Shown piece by piece: positions 5,230 to 61,200 of a DNA stretch of 64,000 nucleotides. The first letter of the stretch is position 1. Every line of letters starts with the position of its first letter. Where the stretch lies: positions 8,100,784 through 8,164,783 of the forward strand of contig CM121341.1 in assembly GCA_051530055.1 (NCBI GenBank), written 5' to 3'. A program made the translations under genes and the position numbers. This stretch comes from Neoechinorhynchus agilis. Its lineage: Eukaryota > Animalia > Acanthocephala. A model generated the notes under the pieces. The model made no database searches. It saw only the letters and a program-made list of their open reading frames with translations, and was not told where the DNA came from.

Positions 5230-5890
5230 TATTATCAATCATCGCTGATTTTACCCATGTTTAAGAGACGATTGACCAAGGATAAAATATTGTTCATGAT
5301 ATTCAAGGAGCTTTTAGTCGTTCCCATGATGAATAAGAATAAATCATTATCATAGTTCAGAGAATGAATAAATTTGTGTTTCGGAAAGCCTTTCATTTCG
5401 AAAATTCTTGATGAATTCTATACGATAAATATAATTTAAAAATATAATTTTTCACATCCATGATGTATATTTTTTCGACGCTGCTTATCAGTTATTTGTT
5501 TGCAAATATCATTGGGGAATGTGATTTGGAGTTTGACAATATCGCATGGAAATAAAAGCTATCAAAACTCACAGGATTCATAGTTATCATCGGCAAGTTT
5601 TAATGAGTCTGAAATCAAATTGTAAAGAAAAAATCACTCTATGACCAAAAATGTTTTTAAGATATTCTAAATGAAAAAATGCCTGAGTGAATTTCTATAA
5701 GCCGAATTTATTAACGCCTTGGCCAATAGCACTTAAACAAATAAGTTTGAAATGTCAAAGGAGAATGAATGTTCAAAAGAAATTTCCAAGAAAAAAAGAT
5801 TTTTTCAAACTTAAAAGGCAAAGAACACGTCATTTGCAAAATGTTGATAATTGAGGTACCGGGGACAATGATTGGAATTATTGTTTAATT

Positions 5891-5980
5891 CTTTATCCGG
5901 TAAATGATTTTTTTATTATAGATGTTTCGAACCTCGTCAAGTTCATCTTCTTTAATAAAAAATCATTCACCGGATGAAGA
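5891..5980 (-). mobile_element. Hairpin remnant of a hammerhead-bearing (Penelope pLTR-like) repeat lacking the CUG core
   Basis: Minus strand reads gaagatgaacttgacgaggttcgaaacatctataataaaaaa inside an inverted repeat; homologous to 57729-57855. Confidence 0.55.
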
Positions 5981-6731
5981 CCTTAATAATAACACGTATT
6001 TTGCGATTTAAGTTCAACATTTATAAAATTTCACAGATTGTATTTGATATCAATACGATAGATTTGTGTAATTTCGTTCAAATAACAAAAATAATTTGAA
6101 GGAAAATGACAGAAAATAATGAAAGTGCGAATTTTGATATTACAAGAAAGTACTGAATATTTTTGCGGAAATAAAAAGGATTTCTTGGAAACATTTTTAT
6201 AAGCATCACTGATTTTGAAAATAGAAATAAAGTCTTATTATTAAGTTCAGTAAACGCATCGACAGCCGTAAGGATGAAATACTCCCGCTTTAGAATTTTA
6301 AGTGAAGAAATTAATCGACTGATTGAATCTGCTTAAAAGAATATTGACAAAAAATAAATCACTGTTACAACAATAAGTTGATAGACGAGATTGAAATTTG
6401 GGAACTTTAAAAAGCTTAGATAATTTCTTTCAAATTAAAAAAGATTAGAGAAAAAGCTTTTTCCTTGATGCATTGTTGTTAAAATTCTTTGAGTGATTGC
6501 TAAATGGCAAAGTGCACTTCGTCCCTTAGAACTCTCGAAATCGCTAGAGGCTAAAATAATTCGATATTTGAGAAATGCTCTTCGTTTTGATCGATTTGTT
6601 TTTGAATTATTGTTTTGCTCGATTGGGTTGCAATGATGAACGAAATATTTATTGTATGCTTAATAGCCGAGTTTCGGTTTGTTGGAATGCGCTCTTTTCG
6701 GTTAAGCATAACGATTGCCGTCCGATAACCT

Positions 6732-8527
6732 TTATCCAATTGGATTGAATTGATTGTTATTTTGTTGGTTAATGTTGTAGTTTTGGAGAGCGACCATCGC
6801 TTGCTCCTGCGAGATTAGAACTCCTGAGTTTAAGGCTTTTATTTCGCCGCATCTTTGACAAAGCGGCACAAGGAGAAACTGTGACATTTCGTGGGAGTGA
6901 TTCGGATCAACGCAAATATTGACGTGACAAACCATTTGACTAGCCTGATTGCTATTGTTGACTCGTTGATTGGTTTGAATACTTAATCCGTTTTGGAGAA
7001 TCGCTGTATTGCCATATCTGAAATTTCCATCATTTCCTCCAATGTTAATGTTTTCGACGGGTGCGCTATTCTGCTGTGTTCCGAAATCAATATTCCCAAA
7101 ACCCAACTGTTCATTTCGATTTCCAATATTGGTACTGTTATTGTAGATTCCTTGGACTAAAGCAGCTGCGTTCGTGTTTTCTACTCGGTGGTTGTTCGCC
7201 AAGTTCAAATTTTGATTTGGAAAATATCCATTGGGTGCCATATTCCCAAAACCCAACTGTTCATTTCGATTTCCAATATTGGTACTGTTATTACAGATTC
7301 CTTGGACAAAATAGGCTGCGTTCGTATTTTCTACTCGGTGATTGTTCGCGAATTTCAAATTTTGATTTGGAAAATATCCATTGGGTGCCATATTCCCAAA
7401 ACCCAACTGTTCGTTTCGGTTTCCAATATTGGTACTGTTATTGTAGATTCCTTGGACTAAATAAGTTGCATTCGTATTTCCTACTCGGTGGTTGTTCGCG
7501 AATTTCAAATTTTGATTCGGTAAATATCCATTGGGTGCAATATTCCCAAAATCCAACTGTTCGTTTCGATTTCCAATATTGGTACTGTTATTATAGATTC
7601 CTTGGACTAAATTAGCTGCGTTCGAATTTTCTACTCGGGGGTTGTTCGCCAAGTTCAAATTTTGATTTGGAAAATATCCATTGGGTGCCATATTCCCAAA
7701 ACCCAACTGTTCATTTCGATTTCCAATATTGGTACTGTTATTATAGATTCCTTGGACTAAATCAGTTGCGTTCGTATTTGCCACTCGGTGGTTGTTCGCC
7801 AAGTTCAAATTTTGATTTGGAAAATATCCATTGGGTGCCACATTCCCAAAACCCAACTGTTCATTTCGATTTCCAATATTGGTACTGTTATTACAGATTC
7901 CTTGGACAAAATAGGCTGCGTTCGTATTTTCCACCGTCCTGTTCATTTCATGGGGTGCTGCATGAACGAAATCTCTCGGTTCAAATGAGGACCGGGCCCG
8001 TTTGTTCCGATCATCGTTCATTGATCCAATATTTGTACGTTTTCGGCCCGGTCTTTTGGGTTCTGGCTCCCTGTAATTCGGGTCAATGGTCCACCAAGAT
8101 CTTCTCGGATTATCGTCGTCCTCGATTTTAACGAATTTTTTGTTTATCGTAAGGCAATGTCGAATTGCGTTCTAAATACAATATCGGCGGCCATAAAAAT
8201 TTTAAGTTATGGGAAACTTACCTTCCAAGGCCTACTTTCGACGGGGCCCATTCGATAATTAAAATATAAATTGTTGTCCTCCAGCCATGAATAAATTTCA
8301 CGTAGTTTCAGCCTCTTTTCGGGGCTGCTATAGATTGCTTTTGCGATCAAATCCGCGTAGGTGTACGGCCCCCACGCATTTATTCGTCGACCCTTTGCAC
8401 CAATAAGAATAATCGATTCTTCACTGGTTTCTGATGAATTTCCTTCGATCCGTTGATTTCTATTTCCTTGATACGATTCATCACCATCATCATGAGAATG
8501 AGTAGAGCTTTTCCTGGAATCAGACAT
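6732..8527 (-). CDS. F1: divergent FoxO-type forkhead transcription factor with 50-aa Asn-rich repeats; exons 8527-8222 and 8171-6732, 581 aa
   Basis: Exon 1 RRINAWGPYTYADLIAKAIYSSPEKRLKLREIYSW..WK; 50-nt GTAAGT..TTTAG intron (8221-8172); exon 2 NAIRHCLTINKKFVKIEDDDNPRRSWWTIDP runs in frame into the 429-aa ORF; matches FoxO RRNAWGN.SYADLITKAIESSPEKRLTL..WK|NSIRHNLS. Confidence 0.9.
7092..7934 (-). repeat. Coding VNTR of F1, 150-bp/50-aa unit, about 5.6 copies
   Basis: ttccaatattggtactg recurs every 150 bp; unit is ENTNAAYFVQGICNNSTNIGNRNEQLGFGNMAPNGYFPNQNLNLANNHRV. Confidence 0.95.
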
Positions 8528-29992: not shown

Positions 29993-31542
29993 TTATCCAA
30001 TTGGATTGAATTGATTGTTATTTTGTTGGTTAATGTTGTAGTTTTGGAGAGCGATCATCGCTTGCTCCTGCGAGATTAGAACTCCTGAGTTTAAGGCTTT
30101 TATTTCGCCGCATCTTTGACAAAACGGCACAAGGAAAAACTGTGACATTTCGTGGGAGTGATTCGGATCAACGCAAATATTGACGTGACAAACCATTTGA
30201 CTAGCCTGATTGCTATTGTTGACTCGTTGATTGGTTTGAATACTTAATCCGTTTTGGAGAATCGCTGTATTGCCATATCTGAAATTTCCATCATTTCCTC
30301 CAATGTTAATGTTTTCGACGGGTGCGCTATTCTGCTGTGTTCCGAAATCAATGATCCGGTGATTGTTCGCCAAGTCCAAATTTTGATTTGGAAAATATCC
30401 ATTGGGTGCCATATTCCCAAAACCCAACTGTTCATTTCGATTTCCAATATTGGTACTGTTATTGTGGATTCCTTGGACTAAATTAGTTGCATTCGTATTT
30501 TCCACTCGGTGGTTGTTCGCCAAGTTCAAAGTTTGATTTGGAAAATATCCATTGGGTGCCATATTCCCAAAACCCAACTGTTCGTTTCGATTTCCAATAT
30601 TGGTGCTGTTATTGTGGATTCCTTGGACTAAATTAGTTGCATTCGTATTTTCCACTCGGTGGTTGTTCGCCAAGTTCAAATTTTGATTTGGTAGATATCC
30701 AATGGGTGCCATATTCCCAAAACCCAACTGTTCGTTTCCAATATTGGTACTGTTATTATAGATTCCTTGGACTAAATCAGTTGCGTTCGTATTTGCCACT
30801 CGGTGGTTGTTCGCCAAGTTCAAATTTTGATTTGGAAAATATCCATTGGGTGCCACATTCCCAAAACCCAACTGTTCATTTCGATTTCCAATATTGGTAC
30901 TGTTATTACAGATTCCTTGGACAAAATAGGCTGCGTTCGTATTTTCCACCGTCCTGTTCATTTCATGGGGTGCTGCATGAACGAAATCTCTCGGTTCAAA
31001 TGAGGACCGGGCCCGTTTGTTCCGATCATCGTTCATTGATCCAATATTTGTACGTTTTCGGCCCGGTCTTTTGGGTTCTGGCTCCCTGTAATTCGGGTCA
31101 ATGGTCCACCAAGATCTTCTCGGATTATCGTCGTCCTCGATTTTAACGAATTTTTTGTTTATCGTAAGGCAATGTCGAATTGCGTTCTAAATACAATATC
31201 GGCGGCCATAAAAATTTTAAGTTATGGGAAACTTACCTTCCAAGGCCTACTTTCGACGGGGCCCATTCGATAATTAAAATATAAATTGTTGTCCTCCAGC
31301 CATGAATAAATTTCACGTAGTTTCAGCCTCTTTTCGGGGCTGCTATAGATTGCTTTTGCGATCAAATCCGCGTAGGTGTACGGCCCCCACGCATTTATTC
31401 GTCGATCCTTCGCACTAATAAGAATAATCGATTCTTCACTGGTTTCTGATGAATTTCCTTCGATCCGTTGATTTCTATTTCCTTGATACGATTCATCACC
31501 ATCATCATGAGAATGAGTAGAGCTTTTCCTGGAATCAGACAT
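29993..31542 (-). CDS. F2: FoxO-type forkhead factor with 4 Asn-rich repeats; exons 31542-31237 and 31186-29993, 499 aa
   Basis: Same 50-nt intron (31236-31187); uninterrupted frame; one repeat is the 48-aa variant lacking RN. Confidence 0.9.
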
Positions 31543-40152: not shown

Positions 40153-41856
40153 ATGTCTCATTCCAGGAAAAGCTCTACTCATTCTCATGATGATGGTGAT
40201 GAATCGTATCAAGGAAATAGAAATCAACGGATCGAAGGAAATTCATCAGAAACCAGTGAAGAATCGATTATTCTTATTGGTGCAAAGGGTCGACGAATAA
40301 ATGCGTGGGGCCGTACACCTACGCGGATTTGATCGCAAAAGCAATCTATAGCAGCCCCGAAAAGAGGCTGAAACTACGTGAAATTTATTCATGGCTGGAG
40401 GACAACAATTTATATTTTAATTATCGAATGGGCCCCGTCGAAAGTAGGCCTTGGAAGGTAAGTTTCCCATAACTTAAAATTTTTACGGCCGCCGATATTG
40501 TATTTAGAACGCAATTCGACATTGCCTTACGATAAACAAAAAATTCGTTAAAATCGAGGACGACGATAATCCGAGAAGATCTTGGTGGACCATTGACCCG
40601 AATTACAGGGAGCCAGAACCCAAAAGACCGGGCCGAAAACGTACAAATCCTGGATCAATGAACGATGATCGGAACAAACGGGCCCGGTCCTCATTTGAAC
40701 CGAGAGATTTCGTTCATGCAGCACCCCATGAAATGAACAGGACGGTGGAAAATTCGAACGCAGCCTATTTTGTCCAAGGAATCTGTAATAACAGTACTAA
40801 TATTGGAAATCGAAATGAACAGTTGGGTTTTGGGAATATGGCACCCAATGGATATCTACCAAATCATTTGGTGAACTTGCGAACAACCACCGAGTGGAAA
40901 ATACGAATGCAACTAATTTTGTCCAAGGAATCTGTAATAACAGTACCAATATTGGAAATCGAAACGAACAGTTGGGTTTTGGGAATATGGCACCCAATGG
41001 ATATTTTCCAAATCAAAATTTGAACTTGGCGAACAACCACCGAGTAGAAAACACGAACGCAGCCTATTTAGTCCAAGGAATCTGTAATAACAGTACCAAT
41101 ATTGGAAATCGAAATGAACAGTTGGGTTTTGGGAATATGGCACCCAATGGATATTTTCCAAATCAAAATTTGAACTTGGCGAACAACCACCGAGTAGAAA
41201 ACACGAACGCAGCCTATTTTGTCCAAGGAATCTGTAATAACAGTACCAATGTTGGAAATCGAAACGAACAGTTGGGTTTTGGGAATATTGCGCCCAATGG
41301 ATATTTTCCAAATCAAAATTTGAACTTGGCGAACAACCCCCGAGTGGCAAATACGAACGCAGCTAATTTAGTCCAAGGAATCCACAATAACAGTACCAAT
41401 ATTGGAAATCGAAATGAACAGTTGGGTTTTGGGAATATGGCACCCAATGGATATTTTCCAAATCAAAATTTGGACTTGGCGAACAATCACCGGATCATTG
41501 ATTTCGGAACACAGCAGAATAGCGCACCCGTCGAAAACATTAACATTGGAGGAAATGATGGAAATTTCAGATATGGCAATACAGCGATTCTCCAAAACGG
41601 ATTAAGTATTCAAACCAATCAACGAGTCAACAATAGCAATCAGGCTAGTCAAATGGTTTGTCACGTCAATATTTGCGTTGATCCGAATCACTCCCACGAA
41701 ATGTCACAGTTTCTCCTTGTGCCGCTTTGTCAAAGATGCGGCGAAATAAAAGCCTTAAACTCAGGAGTTCTAATCTCGCAGGAGCAAGCGATGATCGCTC
41801 TCCAAAACTACAACATTAACCAACAAAATAACAATCAATTCAATCCAATTGGATAA
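40153..41856 (+). pseudogene. F3: FoxO-type gene with 5 repeats and two apparent -1 frameshifts (pseudogene or sequencing error)
   Basis: ATG 40153; GGGG instead of GGGGG at 40307-40310; intron 40458-40507; second frameshift at about 40866-40880; C-terminus intact. Confidence 0.75.
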
Positions 41857-42353
41857 AGGTTATCGGACGGCAATCGTTATGCTCAACCGAAAAGAGCGCA
41901 TTCCAACAAACCGAAACTCGGCTATTAAGCATACAATAAATATTTCGTTCATCATTGCAACCCAATCGAGCAAAACAATAATTCAAAAACAAATCGATCA
42001 AAACGAAGAGCATTTCTCAAATATCGAATTATTTTAGTATCCACTCGGAAATTGTACGCAGCGTTTAGATTCATGCGAAAAAAGTATTATTAAAAAACAC
42101 AAGAACTCTGGGAAAAGTTTAATATTGGAAACAAACTACAAATCATTCATTTAAAAAACGCATTCACAATGCTAAAAAGTATATAAATCTCTGAAGGAAA
42201 ATTAAATTAGAGGTAAGATATTAGCGTCCATTGTTCGTTCTGATTCATAATTGTTCAAGCGGCCAGATTTTTTCGCATTTGTTGTTTAAAAGTCGAAAAA
42301 ATCCATTGAAAAAGTAAAGTTTCCTGGCGACAGATTTAAGATCGATCGAATGT

Positions 42354-44308: not shown

Positions 44309-45636
44309 TTTGTAGATCGTTGAGTTGTAAGCGATGATTTTTGTAAAAACATTGAATATTTCCTATTCTTACCATTCCGATAGAACCACAAATATTGGCA
44401 ATTACATAATTATTGTTGCCATCTTTGTTTAAATTTAAAACAAATAACAAGGAAGCAAGTCTTTATATTTGCGTATTTTTATTTGTGCATAAATTCCTTT
44501 ATTTACTCATTGAAACATTTGGAGATCAATGCTTTAAACATTCTTGCACAAACAAACGCTATATTTTTTGGATGTACTGCTCCAAATACTGAGCTTGATT
44601 TTTTTATCAAATGAATCAAGATAACGTTTATGGATTTTATGTTGCAATATCACTGATGAAGTGCGAATCGACTAGGATTTTAGATGTATTGAAAATGAGT
44701 TCTTGGAGTAAAAACAATTTCGTGACAGTTGAGTTGAAGAATTTCAGATGAATTTCTCTTATTTACTTAGGTCAAGAAAGTTAAAGGAAAGTAAAAAGGA
44801 AGCGAATGCTGCCACAAATTGTCAACCAACGAAGTATTTTCCTTTGTTGCCACAACTAATTTTTTACTTTTCGTCTCATTCAAATGGTCTTTGAAAGTAT
44901 CGTGAATTTATGTCTAAACTTTATTGTCAATAGAAAAACGTAGAAATCAATTCTTTAGATTAAAAACGCTCTCATTTTATTTCACTAGGAATATAACGAT
45001 CAACCTTAGAAGTCTCCGAATAAGTTTATCTGCTTTTAAAAAGGGTTGAAAAATGAAATTCGCCAATAATTTCAATCAGTCGGGAGTTTCTGGGAAATGC
45101 GGCAAATAATTCCCTACCAAGACTTATTCACAAAAATCTTAAATGGCAAAAAACAATTTAATTCTGTATTAAATCCAATTAATCTTTTCAAATTATAGTT
45201 TCATAAAAAAATCAAAATTCAAAAAAAAATATTATCAATAGTTTAGGTGTCCAACATTTAAGCTGGATTTAATCATCGCTTCGGAAATATGCCGATGATA
45301 ACCAGAAATGTCTTAAAAAAACGAGCAATTTCAAATGGCATTCGCGAGAAAAAAAGAATCAATCCCCCTAAACAATGAAATTTTCCCACGTTTCTTAAAC
45401 TGGTTTTTATATCTTTATCGGACCTAATAAAATTACTTCAATTTTATGCCAATATAAAAACATGAATAATTCAGTGTTGAAACAAAGTAAAGATTAAGGC
45501 GACTTGGAGAAGGGTAAAAAATAATGTCTATATAGCAGAAATCTTTTCTATTATCTCATTGAAAAAAAGTTTTATCATCTATCAAAAATATTTTTTAAAA
45601 AAACATCGAGTACATTTCAACGCGCTGATTCCAAAT

Positions 45637-47200
45637 TTATCTTCGGATTTGCGATAGCTGTCTTAGTTCTTGAGTTATTCGTAAAGAAGCAGGTCTTTGT
45701 ATTTGCGTGTTTTTATTTGTACATTTAAACATTCTTGCACAAACAAAAACTCCGCACTTTGTAAAACGGTATTCGTTTTTAAAGGAGCAGAAATCATTCA
45801 CACTATCGCTCTGGATCTCTGAGATGCCGTTTTGGTGTAACGGTCGAAAGGACAGGAGGAATGCCCCTACTCTCGGATCGCCAGTGATTCGTCTCAATCT
45901 CTTAGACAATTCTTAGACCAGGTCCTGCGCCGCGGTACCAAACGACCCGAGCGTCTCGACGCCAAATGGAACAAAATAATGATTTCGACTCAGCTCCCTG
46001 TATTTAATCTTTTTACGTTCCTCAGCGGCGATATGGTGGCGAATTTTATGTTGCTGGCTGCGAATGGCGTCCCAGAGAAGGCATTTTCCTTCTCGCCACG
46101 GGAATACTGTGACACCGTCCGATCTACGACGGCCATCGAATCGGCCAAGATTGATCGGCTCTAGGATGTTGGACGCATTCACAGTATTCAGGGCACGGCT
46201 AACAGAATTGCGTTCACTTCGGCGTGTCGCCGACAGACGAGACCATGACGTCCCGATGGTTCTACGGTCCCTTCGGAACGGCAGCAAAGGGGTGTGCACA
46301 TCGATACCCCAAGTCTCAGGGACACTTTGATCTTTACTGTCTCGTCGGAGAGTACCCACAGAAAGTGATTGGGAGAGCTTTGAGCCAAGCACCCGATTCT
46401 CTTGTAGAGACTGCCGCCAATCGATTTCGGTTCACCAGGTCACTGGAATCTGAAATTAAAGAGTTATGAATTCTCGCTACCAGGGGCGAGTCCAAACTGA
46501 TTGTTTGCAACCATTGATGGAGACCTGCTCGCTGCCTGAATATCCAAACAAAAGATCAAGCTCCTCCACGAAATCTTCATCCAAAGTTTTAATTTTCGCC
46601 AAGCACGGATTTAACTACTTTGTAGCTTGCTTCATACGATCCCAAATAAGCTCGCAGCGAAATATTGGCTACTTTTCGGATACCCAAACCGTCGGACGAC
46701 ACAGGCAAGGATGCTTGATGCCAGGCCTCGTCCGACAGCTGAGTATTAAAAAATTTCTCGAGAAAGGCTTTCACCGTCTCGTCTAATTGTGCCAGCTCAT
46801 CCATATGTCTAAAAAAGGTGCTGTGCGCAGCTTATACAGCAGTTTTGGAATGAAGATGGTGTTCTTGATCAGGAGCAGAGCCTCATTTGAAGATATCGTT
46901 CACAATATAGTTTGCCTGGACGCCTCATCTTCCACGTTCATCACTAAAATCTCTGCCAATTTTCGCCGCCTTCTTCACCAGTGTCTCAAAATCGCGCAGT
47001 ACAACAGAGTGGTTACCTCCGAGCGTGGCATCGTACAGGTACCAGCCGTTAAATCTGGACTGGAGAGAGTGCGCGGCGGGATTGATTGCGAGTGGAAAGG
47101 TTATTGGGCCCAAAGGATCCCTTTGTTGAACTCCTATTTCTGACCACAAAACGTGGTTATTGAACAAAGGCAACCGAGTTGAATTCGCATTAAGCATTAA
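45637..47200 (-). mobile_element. Decayed CRE-like RLE retrotransposon (more diverged subfamily)
   Basis: GVQQRDPLGP; QASLPVSSDGLGIR; RLGVSMC..C.CR..GRHGLVCRRHAEVN; GRRRSDGVTVFPWREGKCLLWDA; KYREL..FVPFGVETLG (RLE PD..D-K region). Confidence 0.8.
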
Positions 47201-47369
47201 CGAAAAAGCGAAATGCTTCTGGTGCGTGATCTCTAACTACTTCGAGCAAATCTGCTCGATGAACTGTGTTGAAAGCGTTTAAAAAAATCACATTTCAAGA
47301 TCTCGCACGGCTTTGAGTTTTCGGTGATGAACGTGCGGAGTGAATGAACAATCGCCTCTGCGCAAGCGG

Positions 47370-48308
47370 CCATCCAAATTATTGTTTCGAACATCATTTC
47401 TTGAAATTTCTCTTCAAATCATTGCAATAAAATATTATCGTATTCACTGCATCGTTGGCGACGGCGTATTTTTTATCGATAATACTTTTAGTCCGACAAA
47501 AAAGAGATCTTCGGTACTAAATTCGATTTCATCAGACGGTTTTAAGGGTCTATTTTTCGAAACAGATCCTTCAGAGGTATTTTTAGTCGTTTTAACTCGT
47601 TCTCTAACCTCCGATACTCCGCATGTTAAAAACTCTGTGATCTTCGATCTACTTTTCCTCGTAATCTCGTAAAGAATATTGATTAGCCCGGATACACATC
47701 TCTCATCTTTCAAAAGCATTTGATTCATCGAATTCGTTTCTCGAACCGCGTCCTCTTGCAGTGACATTATCTCCTTTCGTGGATCTTTTGAGCTGAAATT
47801 CCTTTTTAATTTTGATTGTAACTCGATTTTTAAAAGAGCGTTCGCTTTGTTTCCAAACATTTCACTCACAATATTCAAAAATCCTTCTTTGCGTAATTCG
47901 CTCAAGCAAATTTTTCCTCTTAGAATATCTTCAAAATCATTCTTTACCCATCCGTAATTTATGACTTTGGAACCAGATTCATCCTCAACCAGTGACGGAG
48001 AGGAACGAAATATGGTGATCCCTCATTTGGAAGCTACTTTGCTTGCATTAAGATATTAAGACTATTCTTGTAGTCGGCAGTGATTTTCGTCAATATTTTC
48101 TTGAATTTGATCTCCATAGGAAACATTTTATACTTGAGACCTCATCATTGCACGGCCATTGTAAACATTTCGCAATTATCAATATCGTCAACGGTAACCT
48201 ATCGAGCCAATAATTCTCGTAGATTTCGTTTCGGAAACGAGTTTGTTTGAATGTTTGTGGGTAATTTTGTTTTTGAATTTGAAATAATTTTTTAATTTCA
48301 ATACTCAT
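47370..48308 (-). pseudogene. Diverged multi-module (TND-like) paralog, disrupted
   Basis: KRNLRELLAR*VTVDDIDNCEM matches module 1; DILRGKICLSELRKEGFLNIVSEMFGNK matches the module consensus. Confidence 0.65.
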
Positions 48309-48989
48309 TATTCACATTGGTTGCCCTTATGTTTTCGAATCTCTATGCTTTTTACATAATTACCGCATATTAATTAAATCCATTTTAATAAGTCGTCGAA
48401 GATTTAAATTGTAGAAAAATTGGAAGGTACGCTTTTTTTAATTCAGCAGAACAACCTTAAGTACTTTTACTGAAAATGTGCTTCGAAAGTTGGATTTCAT
48501 TCTGAATTAATCCTGGTTTTAATTTTCTTGCAAAAGACTTCGGGCTTTATTAAGACGTAAGATACTTATTTTAAAATCTCTTAAACGCTTAGGACCTTTT
48601 CAAAAAAGAATGAATTATTCACACTAAGAGCATTGCTCAAAAAACGTTTGTTTCAGGTTTAGAAATAACAATTAAATCTTATCGTCATCTGGACTCAATA
48701 TATTCCACATCCAAACAAATCTGGAAATTTTCGCTTCGCCCCTCAGAAGCGAAAAATTCCTTGGACGCTCACACTACCTCGCCTCTTAACACCACCTTTT
48801 CAACTCCCAATATCCTCTTGCCCCCCATCCCGCATACGCAGTTACCAGCCTTATGGTCCCTACACTCAAATCACCCCTTACTACAGTGTCCACCCACGAA
48901 TCCCTTACCACCGAACTACCCCGCCGGTCAACTCCCATCATTTCTCTCTCTGCACAGCTTTAACCCTCCCCGTCAGTGTCCAACCTTCG

Positions 48990-51290
48990 TGTGCCTTCTA
49001 GACATCCCTTTCCAATAATCTTTTATTCTAACATCCGCAACCTCCTCCCCAAACTGGATGAGCTCCATATGGTTGCCTCTTCTTGCAGCGCCGACATCCT
49101 TGTAATTACGGAAACATGGCTCTCACGCCATGGCAAATTATCTGCCTTCTTCCAAACTTTCAAGCTTTTCACCTCACAAGGGACTTCCGAAACAGGGGAG
49201 GCATATCGATCTTCATCCGCACCTCTCTCTTACCATTGCTCTTCACTCTACCTTTTCATCTCCGAAGATCTTGAATGTCTTCACATCCAACTTCAGCTCC
49301 CCCATCCGCAATGGGCAGCGTGAGATCTCTATCGCTGGCCTTTATCGCCCTCCTTTCTCAAACATCCCCAGGGCGATTTTACCAAACTGCCAATCCCGCC
49401 CTCGCTCTCTCATCTCTCCCAACTCGTTACTTTCACCACACGCTTCTCCTCCCGCCTTGATAAAAAATTTTCAAACATCAGGCAATACTCGTGCACTACC
49501 AAACTCCCCCCGATCGCCTCGTCTGACCATTGTTCCACCCTTCTCTCCCCCTCATCACCTCCAAAACATTCATTTTCCGACCCCTACGTTGTCTGGGATA
49601 AACGTGATCATCATACGCAATCCTTTGCTGCATGTGTCAATTCTCTTATCACGCAAAACCGCTCAACCATCTTTGGCATCGACCCCTCGATTGCAATGAG
49701 CTCTTTGTTAAATCAAATAGAATCTGCGATGAAGGACTCCTTTTCTCGCAAAACAATACGAATCTCGAACCGCGACCCTCCATGGTTCTCGCCTTTTCTA
49801 AAAACCCTTCAAATACAGACCACCAAAGCTTTCCGTTCAGATAATCCTGTTTACCCCTCCCTCCACTCCACACTGACCAAACGCATCCGTATAGCCCGCA
49901 AATTATTTTTCTCATCTCGTCTCTCGTCCGTTCCAAATCGAAACTGGTGGCGTGAAATAAAAAATGTCACTGGTATTGGAGGGGTCCCCCAAGGCGCCGT
50001 ACTTTCCCCTCTCCTCTTTGACATTTTTCTAAATGACCTCCATCCCCTCACTCCCCCTACCAAATATTTTCTCTATGCAGATGACCTCACAGTCATTACT
50101 ATCGCATCTCCCTCTCTCTCCCTCTCCACAACCATGAACGAGCTCAACCATCTCATTTCCTCCCTCTCCACCCTAAAGCTCTCCCTAAATTTATCCAAAT
50201 CTTTTGAGCTTGCCGCCCACATTTCTAAACGCAATCTTATCCCCCGCGCCTCTCCCTCTCCCCATCCAACGCTCCTCTTTTCTCCGGATACTGGGCCTGA
50301 TTTCCAAGAAAACCTTAAATGGGATGCCCACATTTCATTTACACTCTCTAAAGCAAACCCTCGTCATTACCTTCTCAAACTCCTCCGGCGTCTCGGCGTA
50401 TCCCCTAAACACCTTGCCCTCTTTTATCTTACTGCCATCCTTCCTATCCTTACATACGCTTTCCCCAATTGCCTCGCCTTTCCCGTCAATGCTCTCCATT
50501 CCCTCGAAACCTTCGGGACTTCACTCCCTCCCCTCGACGCCCACCCTCGATTGCAATGGGTTCTTTGTCAAATCTAATAGAATCTGCGATGAAGGCCTCC
50601 TTTCCTCGCAAAACTATACGAATATCAAACCGCGACCCTCCATGGTTCTCGCCTTTTCTAAAAACCCTTCAAATCCAGGTCACCAAAGCTTTCCGGTCAG
50701 GTAATCCCGCTTACCCCTCCCTCCACTCCACACTGACCAAACGCATCCGAATAGCCCGCAAAGTATTCCTCTCATCTCGTCTCTCGTCCGTTCCCAATCA
50801 AAACTGGTGGCGTGAAATAAAAAATGTCACCGGTCTTGGTAGATCCACCCCCTTCGCATCTCGCCCCAAATCTGATCTCCTCTCAATCCTTAACTCCATG
50901 AATAAAAACCTCTGTCCTCCCCAAACCTCCCATCCATTGTCCCAACCTCCCATCTCACGTTCTGACCCACCCATCCATACATGCCCTTCCCAAGTTTCCC
51001 CACTCAAAATCCTAGAGATCCTTAAACGCCTGCCCCGCCATTCTTCCACTAATTCGATTATCCCAAATTGGGCCATTTGTTTCATCATCCCTGAACTTAT
51101 CGATCCTTTAACGCACATAACGAACCTTAGCTTTCTATTGAGCTCTTTCCCATCGTGTCTTAAGGAAGCCCGTGTCGTCCCCCTACCCAAAAACAATAAA
51201 CAGATTTCCCCGCATCCTTTCGTCCCATCTCTATCCTCTCACCTTTCCCATCCTTCTCTCCTCTACATCACCTCAAAAATGTTCCTATTT
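48990..51290 (+). mobile_element. Rearranged APE-RT LINE remnants (CR1/L2-like)
   Basis: FYSNIRNL..DILVITETWL, GGISIFI, IAGLYRPP (APE); GVPQGAVLSPLLFDIFLNDL, FLYADDL (RT); C-rich strand; linker duplicated at 49680-49975 and 50545-50830. Confidence 0.85.
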
Positions 51291-51565
51291 TAAACAAACG
51301 AGATTCTGACTAGATATTTTCTTATATATTTTTACCCATCCTGGTAAAATTTTAAAAAATCCAGGAAAGACCTCTTGTTTATTCGTCTCTTTCTTTTCGT
51401 TTGTTCTTATGTTTTATATTCGCTGCTCTTTTGATCACAGTTTGTTGATTTGCGATTTCTTAACAACAAATCATAGAAAAACAAAACAAGATGACATCCA
51501 AAACAATTTCCCTTAGGTACAAAGTTCAATCAAAAAAACAAAGTTGATGTTTTCGAATTGGGGAG

Positions 51566-51573
51566 TATAAATA
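51566..51573 (+). promoter_or_regulatory. Candidate TATA box of the F genes (equivalents at 39986-39993 + and 8687-8694 -)
   Basis: gggagTATAAATAcgattcactcattc is conserved about 165 bp upstream of each F start codon. Confidence 0.4.
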
Positions 51574-51732
51574 CGATTCACTCATTCAATCAAGAAAGTT
51601 CGAACATAGAATCTTTCAATCGTCTCCAAGATTTCGGTCGATTATAGCGATCAACTCGATGAACATTTAAGTCGAATTCCTTCTTTATTAATATGAATTA
51701 AATTCATTTTTAATCTGACTTTTCCAATTTAG

Positions 51733-54700
51733 ATGTCTGATTCCAGGAAAAGCTCTACTCATTCTCATGATGATGGTGATGAATCATATCAAGGAAATAG
51801 AAATCAACGGATCGAAGGAAATTCATCAGAAACCAGTGAAGAATCGGTTATTCTTATTAGTGCGAAGGATCGACGAATAAATGCGTGGGGGCCGTACACC
51901 TACGCGGATTTGATCGCAAAAGCAATCCAAAGCAGCCCCGAAAAGAGGCTGAAACTACGTGAAATTTATTCATGGCTGGAGGACAACAATTTATATTTTA
52001 ATTATCGAATGGGCCCCGTCGAAAGTAGGCCTTGGAAGGTAAGTTTCCCATAACTTAAAATTTTAATGGCCGCCGATATTGTATTTAGAACGCAATTCGA
52101 CATTGCCTTACGATAAACAAAAAATTCGTTAAAATCGAGGACGACGATAATCCGAGAAGATCTTGGTGGACCATTGACCCGAATTACAGGGAGCCAGAAC
52201 CCAAAAGACCGGGCCGAAAACGTACAAATCCTGGATCAATGAACGATGATCGGAACAAACGGGCCCGGTCCTCATTTGAACCGAGAGATTTCGTTCATGC
52301 AGCACCCCATGAAATGAACAGGACGGTGGAAAATTCGAACGCAGCTAATTTAGTCCAAGGAATCTGTAATAACAGTACCAATATTGGAAATCGAAATGAA
52401 CAGTTGGGTTTTGGGAATATGGCACCCAATGGATATTTTCCAAATCAAAATTTGAACTTGGCGAACAACCACCGAGTAGAAAATACGAACGCAGCTAATT
52501 TAGTCCAAGGAATCCACAATAACAGTACCAATATTGGAAACGAACAGTTGGGTTTTGGGAATATGGCACCCAATGGATATTTTCCAAATCAAAATTTGAA
52601 CTTGGCGAACAACCACCGAGTAGAAAATACGAACGCAACTAATTTAGTCCAAGGAATCTATAATAACAGTACCAATATTGGAAATCGAAATGAACAGTTG
52701 GGTTTTGGGAATATGGCACCCAATGGATATTTTCCAAATCAAAATTTGAACTTGGCGAACAACCCCCGAGTAGAAAATTCGAACGCAGCTAATTTAGTCC
52801 AAGGAATCTATAATAACAGTACCAATATTGGAAACGAAATGAACAGTTGGGTTTTGGGAATATGGCACCCAATGGATATTTTCCAAATCAAAATTTGAAC
52901 TTGGCGAACAACCCCGAGTAGAAAATTCGAACGCAGCTAATTAGTCGGAATCTATAATAACATTATTGGGAAATGAACAGTTGGGTTTTGGGAATATGGC
53001 ACCCAATGGATATTTTCCAAATCAAAATTTGAACTTGGCGAACAACCACCGAGTAGAAAATTCGAACGCAGCTAATTTAGTCCAAGGAATCTATAATAAC
53101 AGTACCAATATTGGAAACCGAAATGAACAGTTGGGTTTTGGGAATATGGCACCCAATGGATATTTTCCAAATCAAAATTTGAACTTGGCGAACAACCCCC
53201 GAGTAGAAAATTCGAACGCAGCTAATTTAGTCCAAGGAATCTATAATAACAGTACCAATATTGGAATCGAAATGAACAGTTGGGTTTTGGGAATATGGCA
53301 CCCAATGGATATTTTCCAAATCAAAATTTGAACTTGGCGAACAACCACCGAGTAGAAAATACGAACGCAACTAATTTAGTCCAAGGAATCTATAATAACA
53401 GTACCAATATTGGAAAAACGGTTTTGGGAATATGGCACCCAATGGATATTTTCCAAATCAAAATTTGAACTTGGCGAACAACCCCCGAGTAGAAAATTCG
53501 AACGCAGCTAATTTAGTCCAAGGAATCTATAATAACAGTACCAATATTGGAAATGAACAGTTGGGTTTTGGGAATATGGCACCCAATGGATATTTTCCAA
53601 ATCAAAATTTGAACTTGGCGAACAACCCCCGAGTAGAAAATTCGAACGCAGCTAATTTAGTCCAAGGAATCTATAATAACAGTACCAATATTGGAAATGA
53701 ACAGTTGGGTTTTGGGAATATGGCACCCAATGGATATTTTCCAAATCAAAATTTGAACTTGGCGAACAACCCCCGAGTAGAAAATTCGAACGCAACTTAT
53801 TTAGTCCAAGGAATCTATAATAACAGTACCAATATTGGAAATGAACAGTTGGGTTTTGGGAATATGGCACCCAATGGATATTTTCCAAATCAAAATTTGA
53901 ACTTGGCGAACAACCCCCGAGTAGAAAATTCGAACGCAGCTAATTTAGTCCAAGGAATCTATAATAACAGTACCAATATTGGAAAGAAATGAACAGTTGG
54001 GTTTTGGGAATATGGCACCCAATGGATATTTTCCAAATCAAAATTTGAACTTGGCGAACAACCCCCGAGTAGAAAATTCGAACGCAGCTAATTTAGTCCA
54101 AGGAATCTATAATAACAGTACCAATATTGGAAATCGAAATGAACAGTTGGGTTTTGGGAATATGGCACCCAATGGATATTTTCCAAATCAAAATTTGAAC
54201 TTGGCGAACAACCCCCGAGTAGAAAATTCGAACGCAACTAATTTAGTCCAAGGAATCTATAATAACAGTACCAATATTGGAAACGAAATGAACAGTTGGG
54301 TTTTGGGAATATGGCACCCAATGGATATTTTCCAAATCAAAATTTGAACTTGGCGAACAACCCCCGAGTAGAAAATTCGAACGCAACTTATTTAGTCCAA
54401 GGAATCTATAATAACAGTACCAATATTGGAAATGAACAGTTGGTTTTGGGAATATGGCACCCAATGGATATTTTCCAAATCAAAATTTGAATTGCGAACA
54501 ACCCCGAGTAGAAATCGAAGCACTATTTAGTCCAAGGAATCTAAATAACAGTACCAATATTGGAAATGAACAGTTGGGTTTTGGGAATATGGCACCCAAT
54601 GGATATTTTCCAAATCAAAATTTGAACTTGGCGAACAACCCCCGAGTAGAAAATTCGAACGCAACTTATTTAGTCCAAGGAATCTATAATAACAGTACCA

Positions 54701-56720
54701 ATATTGGAAATCGAAATGAACAGTTGGGTTTTGGGAATATGGCACCCAATGGATATTTTCCAAATCAAAATTTGAACTTGGCGAACAACCCCCGAGTAGA
54801 AAATTCGAACGCAGCTAATTTAGTCCAAGGAATCTATAATAACAGTACCAATATTGAAACGAAATGAACAGTTGGGTTTTGGGAATATGGCACCCAATGG
54901 ATATTTTCCAAATCAAAATTTGAACTTGGCGAACAACCCCCGAGTAGAAAATTCGAACGCAACTAATTTAGTCCAAGGAATCTATAATAACAGTACCAAT
55001 ATTGGAAATCGAAATGAACAGTTGGGTTTTGGGAATATGGCACCCAATGGATATTTTCCAAATCAAAATTTGAACTTGGCGAACACCCCCGAGTAGAAAA
55101 TTCGAACGCAGCTAATTTAGTCAAGGAATCTATAATAACAGTACCAATATTGGAAATGAACAGTTGGGTTTTGGGAATATGGCACCTAATGGATATTTTC
55201 CAAATCAAAATTTGAACTTGGCGAACAACCCCCGAGTAGAAAATTCGAACGCAACTTTTAGTCCAAGGAATCTATAATAACAGTACCAATATTCGAAATG
55301 AACAGTTGGGTTTTGGGAATATGGCACCCAATGGATATTTTCCAAATCAAAATTTGAACTTGGCGAACAACCCCCGAGTAGAAAATTCGAACGCAGCTAA
55401 TTTAGTCCAAGGAATCTATAATAACAGTACCAATATTGGAAATCGAAATGAACAGTTGGGTTTTGGGAATATGGCACCTAATGGATATTTTCCAAATCAA
55501 AATTTGAACTTGGCGAACAACCCCCGAGTAGAAAATTCGAACGCAGCTAATTTAGTCCAAGGAATCTATAATAACAGTACCAATATTGGAAACGAAATGA
55601 ACAGTTGGGTTTTGGGAATATGGCACCCAATGGATATTTTCCAAATCAAAATTTGAACTTGGCGAACAACCCCCGAGTAGAAAATTCGAACGCAACTTAT
55701 TTAGTCCAAGGAATCTATAATAACAGTACCAATATTGGAAATCGAAAGAACAGTTGGGTTTTGGGAATATGGCACCCAATGGATATTTTCCAAATCAAAA
55801 TTTGAACTTGGCGAACAACCACCGAGTAGAAAATTCGAACGCAACTTATTTAGTCCAAGGAATCTATAATAACAGTACCAATATTGGAAACCGAAATGAA
55901 CAGTTGGGTTTTGGGAATATGGCACCTAATGGATATTTTCCAAATCAAAATTTGAACTTGGCGAACAACCCCCGAGTAGAAAATTCGAACGCAGCTAATT
56001 TAGTCCAAGGAATCTATAATAACAGTACCAATATTGGAAATCGAAATGAACAGTTGGGTTTTGGGAATATGGCACCTAATGGATATTTTCCAAATCAAAA
56101 TTTGAACTTGGCGAACAACCCCCGAGTAGAAAATTCGAACGCAACTTATTTAGTCCAAGGAATCTATAATAACAGTACCAATATTGGAAATGAACAGTTG
56201 GGTTTTGGGAATATGGCACCCAATGGATATTTTCCAAATCAAAATTTGAACTTGGCGAACAACCCCCGAGTAGAAAATTCGAACGCAACTTATTTAGTCC
56301 AAGGAATCTATAATAACAGTACCAATATTGGAAATGAACAGTTGGGTTTTGGGAATATGGCACCCAATGGATATTTTCCAAATCAAAATTTGAACTTGGC
56401 GAACAACCCCCGAGTAGAAAATTCGAACGCAGCTAATTTAGTCCAAGGAATCTATAATAACAGTACCAATATTGGAAATGAACAGTTGGGTTTTGGGAAT
56501 ATGGCACCCAATGGATATTTTCCAAATCAAAATTTGAACTTGGCGAACAACCCCCGAGTAGAAAATTCGAACGCAGCTAATTTAGTCCAAGGAATCTATA
56601 ATAACAGTACCAATATTGAAACGAAATGAACAGTTGGGTTTTGGGAATATGGCACCCAATGGATATTTTCCAAATCAAAATTTGAACTTGGCGGACAACC
56701 ACCGAGTAGAAAATACGAAT
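51733..56720 (+). pseudogene. F4: FoxO-type gene with about 30 Asn-rich repeats, frameshifted array, C-terminal domain absent
   Basis: Intact exon 1 (51733-52038), intron 52039-52088, exon 2 open to about 52835; array ends abruptly near 56720. Confidence 0.8.
52329..56720 (+). repeat. About 30 tandem copies of the 150/144-bp F unit
   Basis: 30 occurrences of ggatattttccaaatc counted between 52431 and 56661. Confidence 0.95.
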
Positions 56721-56842
56721 AGTTTGGGGATGATGTAGCGAAGAGCCCAGTCTTGGATTTCTGAATTAAAGGACGAATTTCGAGCTAATTTCTTGTGGTG
56801 CTGTAGTAATTATTTGTTAATAGGAGAGATAAATGAGATTAA

Positions 56843-56896
56843 GATTTTATTGGATATTTCGATCCACTCTCTCGGATCTTCTTCAGCGATCTAAAA
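56843..56896 (-). ncRNA. Minimal type I hammerhead ribozyme-like motif (degenerate stem I)
   Basis: CTGAAGA-a-GATCC-gagagagt-GGATC-GAAA-TATC followed by caataaa; lies 3' of a GIY-YIG ORF on the same strand. Confidence 0.6.
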
Positions 56897-57048
56897 CACA
56901 TATACACAGGGATTCTCAATTCACGCGTCACATAACATCCGGTGGGAGTCGCATCCTGAATTTGAAATCAGGTTTATTGCCCTCGAACGTTTCGAACCTA
57001 TTTATAAGGATTCGATGATAACACGTTCGAAACGCCGACTATTGCAAA

Positions 57049-57276
57049 CTAGTGTTGTAGCGGCTGGGCCACCACTACGGAACTAATATCCGTGTTGCGA
57101 ACAACTGATGATTCGTGAATCCGTCGGGTGAAATTGTTGGTCTGTCCCACATAGACCTGTTCGCAACCGGAGCACGGAATTTTGTAGACCGCACGAGATG
57201 ACTGTTGGCCATTCTTGGGACATATCAATCCGTGTACTCTCTCGGCCTCACATCCTGATTTTATGATGCGCTCCAT
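57049..57276 (-). mobile_element. GIY-YIG endonuclease fragment of a Penelope-like element
   Basis: AVYKIPCSGCEQVYVGQT..RRIHE is the PLE-type GIY-YIG with CxxC between the two motifs. Confidence 0.8.
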
Positions 57277-57509
57277 AGCAAGATAAGAATGATCATCAGG
57301 GAATTTTTCAAATTAAGAAATATTTCGAAAGAGGAAACCTCGCTTTATAGATTCTGAACTACGTATTCCAGACAGAAGCCCTTAATCCAAGCGGATTCAG
57401 CTTTCTGGCCTTGGTTAATTTTTTACGGGACACGACTTTTCTCCAATCTGAGGATTGTGGTAATAATTCCTTTGCAAACGAGCTCTACATGGCCAGTACA
57501 CGGACCGAA

Positions 57510-57575
57510 CCAACAAACTGATAACGAATCCGACGAGGTTGGCAGAACGTTTTTAATCGAAAAAAATTATTTACC
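57510..57575 (+). ncRNA. Degenerate tandem copy of the 57781 hammerhead
   Basis: aactgataacgaatccgacgaggttggcagaacgtttttaat, 273 bp upstream of the intact core. Confidence 0.5.
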
Positions 57576-57780
57576 GTGCGAAGACTTCTAAGCAATAATC
57601 CTAAAAAATGTCTGCTTAAGAAAAAGAACCAGCTCCAATGAGTTACCTAATTCTCCAAATGTCAAAGCTTTCAAGATTTTGATATTTGAGGAGGTACTGG
57701 GATTTATGATTAGGATTATTGTTAAGAAGTCTTCATCCGCGGTAAATAACGTTTTTATTAAAGATGTTTCGAAAACATTG

Positions 57781-57835
57781 TATTTTAGAACTGATGATGA
57801 ATCCGGCGAGGTTCGAAACGTCTTTAATAAAAAAC
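57781..57835 (+). ncRNA. Minimal type I hammerhead ribozyme
   Basis: CTGATGA-t-GAATC-cggcga-GGTTC-GAAA-CGTC; palindromic ACGT stem III; GUC site; AATAAA immediately downstream. Confidence 0.75.
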
Positions 57836-58212
57836 ATAATTTACCGGGCGAAGACGTGTATAGAATAATAAAATATCTATTAAAAGGACTAAAGGCTGAG
57901 CTACCCATAAAAAATGCTAAATAATCCAAATCTTTCAAGTGAATCTCGGTAACATTGCCAATTGAACCCATAAAATGTACCAGAGGAATACAGAGACCTT
58001 AAAAGAATAACGTTATCGTTTTATGACTAAAAAATGCGAGTACATTGTCAGGTTGGCTAAATTTGCTCATTTTTGACGTTTGCAATTGGCGAAGATTCCA
58101 AAAGCTTAAAATTGTCTTAAAAATAAAATGCTCATGAGTTTGTTGACTGTCCCATCGATCAATAGAAAGGCGGATTCTCGTGTTCATTTTAGTACTTTTT
58201 GTGTGAGTGAAA

Positions 58213-61200
58213 TCACTGCCATTTTAAGGCGGCATTGGGCCCATCTCCGCCGGAAACAGGCGAGGAAGATTTTTCCCTTACCGAAGGTCTCACAGGATCG
58301 AAATAGGGATGTGCCATTGCTTCTCGAGCAGTTAATCTGTCCATATGATCGTACCTAAGAAGGTGATCAATAAAATCAATAGTTTCAGGTGATACGAGAT
58401 GCTGATTCTCTTTGGTGGTGAATCGCTCCCATCGTCTTCTTGGATGACTACCAATCATTCCACTAAATCTTGTGTCAAGATCGATCCCGTATTTATCGAG
58501 ATAAGCGAAGAAGTCAGCGGTTCCAAGAACTTTTACTATCCTTACCAGTTGATCGTAATTGTCATGACCGTGGAAAAACGGTTCTCTTCTAAAGACCATT
58601 GAAGCAACCATACAACCGAGGCTCCATAGATCCAGGGAATAGTCATAGTATTGATAGTCAACTAAAAGTTCTGGACCTTTGAAGTATCGAGAAGCCACTC
58701 GGACATTGTAGGCTGATCCTGGATGATAAAACTCGGCTAATCCCCAATCTATCAGACGAAGTTGACGATGGTCGTGATCGATCACTACGTTATGTGGTTT
58801 GACGTCTCTATGCATTATGCCTTGCTGATGACAGAAATCTAGAGCCTTTTAGAAACTAAACTTTTAAGTAGCATTCAAATTTTTACTAACCTTTAAAATC
58901 TCAAATGTATAATAACGAATGTCGAAATCTGACATTTGTTGAAAGAGTTTGAAATCAACATTGTTGACGTACTCGGTTATAAGCGCCGGTGATCGACCCT
59001 GAAAATATCGATTTTGGTTCTCGTCGCTGTCGGGCAAAGTTTTCAAGAAATATTGGAGTATAACAAAAAAGGGTAAAATCCGATTTACCATCATTTTTAA
59101 GCGAGAGAAAATGTTTAAACGAGTTAAACGAAATGCATTTAACTTTCAAGTATCCGCAACGTCTTTTCCCTCTAATCTTTTTTTCTATAATTTTGAACAT
59201 TCGCGAAGTTTAAGTTTGAAAAGAAATTAGATTTCGTTCCTTGTTTTTGCTGGAAAGAAAATTTAATAAACTCATTAAATCATTGAAGTCAAATGATCGG
59301 AGAGATGAGCAAATATTTTGAAAAAAAACTAAGAGAAATAAAGGGTAAAATCCGATTTACCATCATTTTTAAGAGAGAAAAAATGTTTAAACGAGTTAAA
59401 CGAAATGCATTTAACTTTCAAGTATCCGCAACGTCTTTTCCCTTTAATCTTTTTTTCTATGATTTTGAACATTCGCGAACTTTGAGTTTGAAAAGAAATT
59501 AGATTTCGTTCCTTGTTTTTGCTGGAAAGAAAATTTAATAAACTCATTAAATCATTGAAGTCAAATGATCGGAGAGATGACCAAATATTTTGAAAAAAAC
59601 TAAGAGAAATAAAGGGTAAAATCCGATTTACCATCATTTTTAAGCGAGAAAAAATGTTTAAACGAGTTAAACGAAATGCATTTAACTTTCAAGTATCCGC
59701 AACGTCTTTTCCCTTTAATCTTTTTTTCTATAATTTTGAACATTCGCGAAGTTTAGTTTGAAAAGAAATTAGATTTCGTTCCTTGTTTTTGCTGGAAAGA
59801 AAATTTAATAAACTCATTAAATCGTTGAAGTCAAATGATCGGAGAGATGACCAAATATTTTGAAAAAAACTAAGAGAAATAAAGGGTAAAATCCGATTTA
59901 CCATCATTTTTAAGCGAGAAAAAATGTTTAAACGAGTTAAACGAAATGCATTTAACTTTAAAGTATCCGCAACGTCTTTTCCCTTTAATATTTTTTTCTA
60001 TAATTTTGAACATTCGCGAACTTTGAGTTTGAAAAGAAATTAGATTTCGTTCCTTGTTTTTGCTGGAAAGAAAATTTAATAAACTCATTAAATCGTTGAA
60101 GTCAAATGATCGGAGAGATGACCAAATATTTTGAAAAAAACTAAGAGAAATAAAGGGTAAAATCCGATTTACCATCATTTTTAAGCGAGAAAAATGTTTA
60201 AACGAGTTAAACGAAATGCATTTAACTTTAAAGTATCCGCAACGTCTTTTCCCTTTAATATTTTTTTCTATAATTTTGAACATTCGCGAAGTTTAAGTTT
60301 GAAAAGAAATTAGATTTCGTTCCTTGTTTTTGCTGGAAAGAAAATTTAATAAACTCATTAAATCATTGAAGTCAAATGATCGGAGAGATGAGCAAATATT
60401 TTGAAAAAAAACTAAGAGAAATAAAGGGTAAAATCCGATTTACCATCATTTTTAAGCGAGAAAAATGTTTAAACGAGTTAAACGAAATGCATTTAACTTT
60501 CAAGTATCCGCAACGTCTTTTCCCTCTAATCTTTTTTTCTATAATTTTGAACATTCGCGAACTTTGAGTTTGAAAAGAAATTAGATTTCGTTCCTTGTTT
60601 TTGCTGGAAAGAAAATTTAATAAACTCATTAAATCATTGAAGTCAAATGATCGGAGAGATGAGCAAATATTTTGAAAAAAAACTAAGAGAAATAAAGGGT
60701 AAAATCCGATTTACCATCATTTTTAAGCGAGAAAAATGTTTAAACGAGTTAAACGAAATGCATTTAACTTTCAAGTATCCGCAACGTCTTTTCCCTTGAA
60801 TCTTTTTTTCTATAATTTTGAACATTCGCGAACTTTGAGTTTGAAAAGAAATTAGATTTCGTTCCTTGTTTTTGCTGGAAGAAAATTTAATAAACTCATT
60901 AAATCATTGAAGTCAAATGATCGGAGAGATGAGCAAATATTTTGAAAAAAAACTAAGAGAAATAAAGGGTAAAATCCGATTTACCATCATTTTTAAGCGA
61001 GAAAAATGTTTAAACGAGTTAAACGAAATGCATTTAACTTTAAAGTATCCGCAACGTCTTTTCCCTTTAATCTTTTTTTTTCTATGATTTTGAACATTCG
61101 CGAAGTTTAAGTTTGAATTTAGAAGAAAAGTCGACTTTTCCTGAGCAAAATTTCAAAAGACTTACACAAGGATCTTTGACCACATCAAGAAGCTTTATAA

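Follow-up and report, generated by a model that had tools for sequence, protein, structure and literature searches.

A retroelement-truncated FoxO-like gene copy with a coding minisatellite of about 30 units in Neoechinorhynchus agilis

The 64,000-nucleotide stretch of the Neoechinorhynchus agilis genome analysed here (assembly GCA_051530055.1, contig CM121341.1, forward-strand positions 8,100,784 to 8,164,783; hereafter the window, numbered from its first letter) carries four copies of a FoxO-like gene, F1 to F4. Three more (Ca, Cb and Cc) lie on C48, a 21.7-kb contig, so that seven close copies are known. Their proteins combine a DNA-binding domain of the FoxO class and a basic linker with Asn-rich units of 50 residues, in variable number, and a conserved Cys/His C-terminal domain. 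In five of the six close copies other than F4, exon 2 is fully open (479 codons in F1, 397 in F2, 745 in Ca, 549 in Cb and 347 in Cc), and these copies hold 3–11 units, each of exactly 150 or 144 bp, together with a C-terminal region of about 120 residues. The subject of this report is F4, in which the repeat runs to 4.4 kb. We favour, on balance, a reading in which F4 is a retroelement-truncated, probably decaying paralog whose array expanded in place to about 30 units and whose frameshifts are mostly uncorrected nanopore errors.

The 5' part of F4 closely resembles that of its relatives: the 873 bp that precede the array (51458-52330) are 98% identical to the pre-array regions of the other three window arrays. 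Exon 1 matches the forkhead profile Pfam PF00250 at 41 bits (E 2.1e-10, cut-off 27 bits) and exon 2 alone reaches 26.8 bits over profile positions 49-85, the two halves of the domain having been searched separately. Among solved structures, FOXO1, FOXO3, FOXO4 or AFX make up the top 11 matches of exon 1 and the top 8 of exon 2, counting apart one entry in each list that is labelled only 'fork head domain containing protein'. The alignment of residues 46-102 to FOXO1 is free of gaps and runs through the FoxO-specific loop, an insertion before helix 3. By its sequence, the F4 forkhead is of the FoxO class (FOXO1/3/4, DAF-16), with which it shares these best matches in both exons, the gap-free loop and the Asn, Arg and His of the recognition helix (NAIRH). 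Vertebrate FOXO genes have an intron just before the recognition helix, as F4 does; the 50-nt intron is kept in all seven close copies and the NCBI model P0004 (ACOME3_001945) uses the same splice. F4 differs from FOXO in its recognition helix (NAIRHCLTIN versus NSIRHNLSLH), possibly in having no clear RxRxxS/T kinase site after the domain (judged by eye, GRKRTNPGS and KRARSS fit the Akt/PKB motif inexactly) and in belonging to an amplified family, found in N. agilis only, whose tail is an Asn-rich 50-residue repeat with a Cys/His C-terminal domain. Bases private to F4 occur at 51786 (A) and 51847 (G), and its proximal promoter has four private substitutions at 51481-51511 and one at 51655. 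A preliminary description of this locus had called the forkhead, intron and promoter intact. For the forkhead and intron this holds, both exon parts being open and the intron GT-AG; for the promoter it holds only from 51458 to 51732 (the proximal 275 bp); immediately upstream of that, ~200 bp common to the other copies are replaced by retroelement in F4.

Tandem Repeats Finder (TRF) puts the copy number of the 150-bp array, which it locates at 52329-56719, at 30.1 (95% matches, 3% indels); shorter arrays of the same unit lie at 7090-7931 (-), 30357-30949 (-) and 40745-41492 (+). When the F4 array is cut at a conserved motif it yields 30 full units from 52326 on and 14 nt of a 31st, with lengths of 150, 144, 150, 148, 135, 150, 149, 137, 144 (three times), 148, 150, 149 and 140 bp for units 1-15 and 138, 150, 148, 149, 143, 142, 150, 149, 149, 150, 150, 144 (three times) and 148 bp for units 16-30. 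About 17 are of the 150 type and 11 of the 144 type, which is the 150 type minus an in-frame 6-bp deletion, and two are badly damaged; the length of 14 of the 30 is not a multiple of three. The run 144, 144, 144, 148 occurs twice and was considered as a higher-order repeat, but the linked markers of the two runs differ and no block has been duplicated. The FoxO binding site TGTTTAC is absent from the F4 array and occurs at chance frequency across the window.

The 150-bp units of F4 differ from one another by 1.6-2.0% on average (mean pairwise distance), compared with 6.6% in the other arrays, and the F4 core unit lies at least 3 substitutions from every unit found in those arrays. Therefore, one unit lineage has been amplified in place, and recently. 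In its unique 5' part, too, F4 stands further from the other copies (12-18 differences) than these do from one another (2-11). These results agree with much of what the preliminary description had proposed, namely a variable-number tandem repeat (VNTR) of about 30 units and 4.4 kb that mixes 150- and 144-bp units, is more homogeneous than those of F1-F3 and has undergone a 'runaway' expansion. Its further suggestion of a satellite being born does not follow. At the DNA level the unit is confined to the gene copies on contigs C1, C48 and C2 and to one 95-bp fragment, and a new satellite is therefore not supported; a single-locus array of 4.4 kb is a minisatellite. The fragment (C1:4114581-4114675) is 84-88% identical to the unit and stands alone, with nothing else of the gene in its vicinity. 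A literature search for exon-derived satellites returned nothing directly comparable.

At its 3' end F4 is incomplete. The 608 bp that F1-F3 have in common after the array are missing, no C-terminal region follows F4 within the window and no orphan copy of it was found elsewhere in the genome, which holds six close C-terminal copies compared with seven N-terminal ones. A retroelement cuts the array in its 31st unit, and the C-terminal domain of F4 is therefore gone. The flanking sequence is a dispersed repeat (1220 candidates at first look). The piece next to F4 comprises only the 3' 500-590 bp of the element, and its GIY-YIG match is weak and below threshold (E 0.025); longer copies carry RVT_1 (E 3.5e-5) and then GIY-YIG (E 1.1e-4; 22.9 bits, cut-off 22.6) on the same strand, and the repeat therefore has a Penelope-like architecture, from which the local piece differs in being a 3' end only. 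The junction alignment and these longer copies thus bear out an earlier remark that the array ends at Penelope-like debris without the C-terminal domain. A second retroelement block lies upstream (Table 1) and includes a reverse transcriptase open reading frame (ORF) at 49696-50577 (Pfam RVT_1, E 3.7e-10); C48 is without this block and shows the undisrupted cassette. F4 is thus the cognate third gene of this cassette, the forkhead gene of the third cassette copy in an N. agilis-specific FoxO-like cluster, and is hemmed in on both sides by retroelement 3' ends. An Rfam search of 45500-59000 gave nothing at E 0.1, and no hammerhead near F4. The C-rich part of the upstream block at 49600-51300 (+) contains an internal tandem duplication, its segments from ~49680 and ~50530 sharing an ORF start. 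Beyond the downstream debris, at 58213-59094 (-), ORF translations read by eye resemble exons of a casein-kinase-2-alpha-like kinase.

Table 1. Features of the F4 locus, in window positions.
Feature	Position	Strand	Basis
Retroelement block in place of ~900 bp of the ancestral upstream cassette	45622..51457	+	C48 homology stops at 45621 and resumes at 51458
Proximal promoter and 5' untranslated region, common to other copies	51458..51732	+	blastn, 98% identity to F1-F3 from 51458 on
Exon 1, 102 codons, open; N-terminal half of FoxO-class forkhead	51733..52038	+	Pfam PF00250, ORF check
GT-AG intron, 50 nt, splitting the forkhead just before the recognition helix (..PWK / NAIRH..)	52039..52088	+	Sequence
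Pre-array exon 2, open; second forkhead half and basic linker	52089..52325	+	Pfam PF00250, structure matches
Coding minisatellite of 150 bp (50 codons, 30% Asn)	52326..56719	+	TRF, unit table
Deletion cluster 1: 135-bp unit with five separate deletions	52918..53052	+	Alignment to consensus
Deletion cluster 2: 140- and 138-bp units	54368..54645	+	Nine small deletions, the 6-bp one not counted
3' part of a 5'-truncated Penelope-like retroelement, adjoining the broken 31st unit	56721..57304	-	Junction alignment, dispersed repeat

The frameshifts within the array require separate consideration. We counted deletions by aligning each unit pairwise to the 150-bp consensus, leaving out the 6-bp deletion of the 144 type; a count based on a multiple sequence alignment was set aside as unreliable, since its consensus itself had gap columns. 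The 4.4 kb of the F4 array show a single private substitution (C102T, synonymous) alongside 30 small deletions of 24 kinds and no insertion. The 34 units of the other arrays show 44 substitution variants, one frameshifting deletion and no insertion (Fisher p 5e-11 for the difference in spectrum), and the 868 bp of the F4 5' part have 9 private substitutions with neither deletions nor insertions. In a control coding array of 4.8 kb at C1:10.025 Mb the spectrum looks natural: 84 substitution variants were counted along with 10 deletions and 5 insertions. Thirty deletions with almost no substitutions in a very young array are therefore not ordinary mutation, and residual errors of nanopore R9.4 sequence are mostly deletions. 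Of the 30, twelve are concentrated in 13 of the 150 unit positions, at GAAATCGAAATG, the site of the 150/144 indel (p 3e-6), where they take five different forms; reads that disagreed or were mis-registered on 150 versus 144 would produce a consensus with such clustering. Loss of a T from GGAAATCG (unit position 66) recurs in five units that carry different linked markers, which are therefore not copies of one mutated unit, and GGAAACGAAATG is an example of the odd forms. The first odd deletion, of 1 bp, is met at ~52835, 509 bp into the array, a distance close to the Illumina insert size of 500 bp. In the second cluster of Table 1 the unit at 54368 has 4 events and that at 54508 has 5 beyond the 6-bp one.

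The way in which the genome was assembled offers an explanation. The assembly (102 contigs, 46.2 Mb) was built with MaSuRCA/Flye from Illumina paired-end 150-bp reads (insert 500 +/- 50) and Oxford Nanopore Technologies (ONT) R9.4 reads of DNA pooled from ~50 worms, with almost no HiFi data, and was scaffolded by Hi-C before gap-closing with TGS-GapCloser (PMC12690905). R9.4 consensus sequence keeps frameshifting indels unless polished with short reads (PMC9262707). Illumina correction can reach about one insert length (500 bp) inward from the unique 5' flank of the array, the high-copy 3' flank giving no anchor. Because of the deletion-only spectrum, the clustering at the 150/144 site and the R9.4 hybrid assembly, most of the deletions in the F4 array are very likely technical. 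The preliminary description had noticed both the recurrent -1 variant (here in 5 units) and the clustered deletions (the units at 52918, 54368 and 54508), and had taken the deletions for read noise; the spectrum, the clustering and the assembly method favour that branch for most of the deletions, taken as a set.

Several points weigh against our reading. The evidence for a technical origin is indirect and bears on the deletions as a set. A 2-kb array at 59068-61117 is 97% homogeneous with 0% indels, which shows that an array can be homogeneous without being noisy. The T loss at unit position 66, seen five times, could be a real variant spread by exchange, and the two 1-bp deletions of F3 sit outside any long homogeneous array. 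In the pre-array coding sequence of F4 just two changes are private, one of them synonymous and the other Ile to Val, and that part therefore shows no sign of decay. The F3 deletions themselves (F3 lies at 40153-41857, +) are both in G runs, GGGGG to GGGG at ~40310 and TTGGCG to TTGCG at ~40868; the NCBI model ACOME3_001943 bypasses both with invented introns, and they may be sequencing errors.

The history that we envisage for F4 is as follows. Retroelements replaced the distal upstream region, and one of them cut the array in its 31st unit and removed the C-terminal domain. Then, or meanwhile, one unit lineage was amplified in place to about 30 units, probably by unequal exchange or replication slippage between 150-bp units, as the homogeneity of the array suggests. 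Most or all of the ~30 small deletions would be errors left in the nanopore consensus, in a stretch whose homogeneity defeats correction with 150-bp Illumina reads, a view that draws on the deletion spectrum and the assembly method. The truncation suggests a dying copy; F4 would most likely be non-functional or decaying, and the long array could then reflect relaxed constraint on length.

What F4 could encode depends on how the deletions are read. As assembled, the first in-frame stop lies at 52896-52898 (+) in unit 4, downstream of the 1-bp deletion at ~52835, as had been anticipated when translation was said to end after about 3.5 units; the 371-residue NCBI model ACOME3_001945 ends at the same codon and thus probably at a sequencing error. 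If all the odd deletions were errors, the frame would continue to a TAG at 56736-56738, six codons into the retroelement, giving a protein of ~1,650-1,700 residues (a length estimate) with an Asn-rich repeat part of ~1,480 residues and a 6-residue tail. With or without the frameshifts, the conserved C-terminal domain is absent from the product. Since the frameshifts look like uncorrected nanopore errors, the assembly cannot show whether F4 still codes. It is conceivable that F4 is intact and expressed, all its frameshifts being errors, and acts as a condensate-forming or dominant-negative transcription factor. The deletion spectrum does point to errors, none of the substitutions in the array introduces a stop, every substitution variant but one is also seen in intact copies, and neither exon 1 nor the intron nor the proximal 275 bp is damaged. 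The unit, moreover, is 30% Asn, 36% Asn plus Gln and 8% charged. We nevertheless consider this unlikely: F4 has lost its distal upstream region and a C-terminal domain that is kept at 76% and 39% in deeper paralogs. A single-sequence AlphaFold2 model of F2 exon 2 was uninformative (mean predicted local distance difference test score, pLDDT, 39), a score this low being no argument for disorder or for a fold. A stronger form, in which F4 is live and open through its ~30 units and its array length varies between worms and tunes or poisons the activity of the FoxO-like family, has in our view an equally small chance. The giant prion-like protein of the preliminary description is accordingly not established, the C-terminal domain and the distal upstream region having been lost to retroelements.

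The length of the array, or its junction, might instead be an artefact of assembly (an over-expanded array, a chimeric join, or gap-filling with pooled nanopore reads that are polymorphic in length), in which case the true locus would resemble Cc on C48, with 3 units and a C-terminal domain. This we regard as distinctly unlikely. The pool of ~50 worms, the hybrid assembly, the gap-closing and the noisy array interior make it thinkable, as does C48, which has the same architecture and an intact 3-unit gene at the position of F4. C48 mirrors window positions 29258-52768 at 96-99% identity, with an inverted pair, a spacer cassette and a third gene; its arrays have 11, 7 and 3 units against 4, 5 and 30 in the window, and all its frames are open. 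C48 represents an unpurged haplotig of the pooled worms or, alternatively, a segmental duplication. F4, however, has 18 differences from Cc in 868 bp and is therefore not simply a mis-assembled Cc; it is the copy most divergent in its 5' part, its unit lineage is distinct from all other units, and ONT reads of at least 5 kb could span 4.4 kb. Assemblers, in addition, usually collapse arrays and rarely expand them. About as unlikely is that the frameshifts, or at least the T loss, are real, leaving a 371-residue product and another 3.8 kb of non-coding, exon-derived minisatellite: the same 1-bp loss in five units, the NCBI annotation that stops there and the relaxed constraint to be expected in a truncated gene speak for it, but 30 deletions with 0 insertions and 1 substitution are unlike neutral decay and the opposite of what is seen in the control array and in the 5' region of F4, most of the deletions are singletons in a very young array, and the unit has not spread outside the gene copies.

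Beyond the close copies, two deeper paralogs on C2 and two on C3 have one unit each and the same C-terminal domain at 76% (C2) and 38-39% (C3) identity; the ancestral gene therefore probably had one unit. Over the family, unit numbers are 1, 3, 4, 5, 5.6, 7, 11 and 30, as compared among assembled copies. In the clean arrays other than F4 the units differ by 6.6% on average with a ratio of nonsynonymous to synonymous differences (pN/pS) of 0.35, and the repeat is therefore under moderate constraint. A search of 5.8 billion proteins returned N. agilis proteins only, and a full HMMER scan of 1.84 billion representatives returned the same N. agilis family and one spurious repeat protein; judged from these searches, the FoxO-like repeat family is known only from N. 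agilis. The C-terminal 120 residues had no match in Pfam, and the domain none in the Atlas or outside N. agilis; an ESM Atlas search with the repeat and C-terminal part gave no usable match. The Cys/His region thus appears to be an unclassified domain. It covers ~120 residues (29996-30355, -, and equivalents) and shows a C..C..H.H..C..C pattern with a terminal helix. At least 66 forkhead exon-1-like matches occur in the 46-Mb genome, many in inverted pairs and clusters, as at C1 4.7-5.07 Mb and 16.6-16.8 Mb. At C1:6781153-6782384 lies a decayed family member in which exon-1 fragments occur on both strands and four stops interrupt a C-terminal fragment.

Coding minisatellites, or VNTRs, are familiar from mucins and from the yeast FLO/ALS adhesins, and F4 belongs to this well-known class. 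As in those families, the units are multiples of three (150 and 144 bp), copy number ranges from 1 to 30 among paralogs or haplotypes, the frame is kept in most copies (F1, F2, Ca, Cb and Cc) and units are homogenised within an array. The differences are that the repeat sits in a nuclear DNA-binding factor and not in a surface protein, and that the longest array is in a truncated copy of doubtful frame. Other FoxO-like genes of N. agilis have coding repeat tails of their own (300 bp x 15.9 at C1:10.025 Mb and 153 bp x ~31 at C1:4.70 Mb); their units are unrelated to that of F4 at the DNA level and are 6-11% divergent, against ~2% in F4. The 300-bp array (at 1223-5997 of C1:10024000-10031000) is not one open frame, having ORFs at 720-1862, 2232-2960 and 4655-6034, and its unit lengths include 302, 299, 294 and 301. 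Q/N-rich prion-like domains are known from yeast proteins of the Sup35/Ure2 type. The F4 unit resembles these in being rich in Asn and Gln and low in charge, with Gly and aromatics interspersed, and its composition may be called prion-like. Unlike a degenerate tract, it is a regular unit of 50 residues in which hydrophobic positions are conserved, and this regular, conserved pattern together with the pN/pS of 0.35 points to a structured repeat unit and not a plain low-complexity tract.

F4 provides a clear and datable case of runaway growth of a coding minisatellite in one paralog of a lineage-specific FoxO-like family. It also carries a caution, in that frameshifts inside long homogeneous arrays of this assembly are not to be taken for biology. 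Although this parasite has lost many regulators, its genome contains at least 66 forkhead-like exons. Should the F4 array prove to be both open and expressed, it would extend a transcription factor naturally by an unusually long Asn-rich stretch, and would give a handle on the effects of repeat number.

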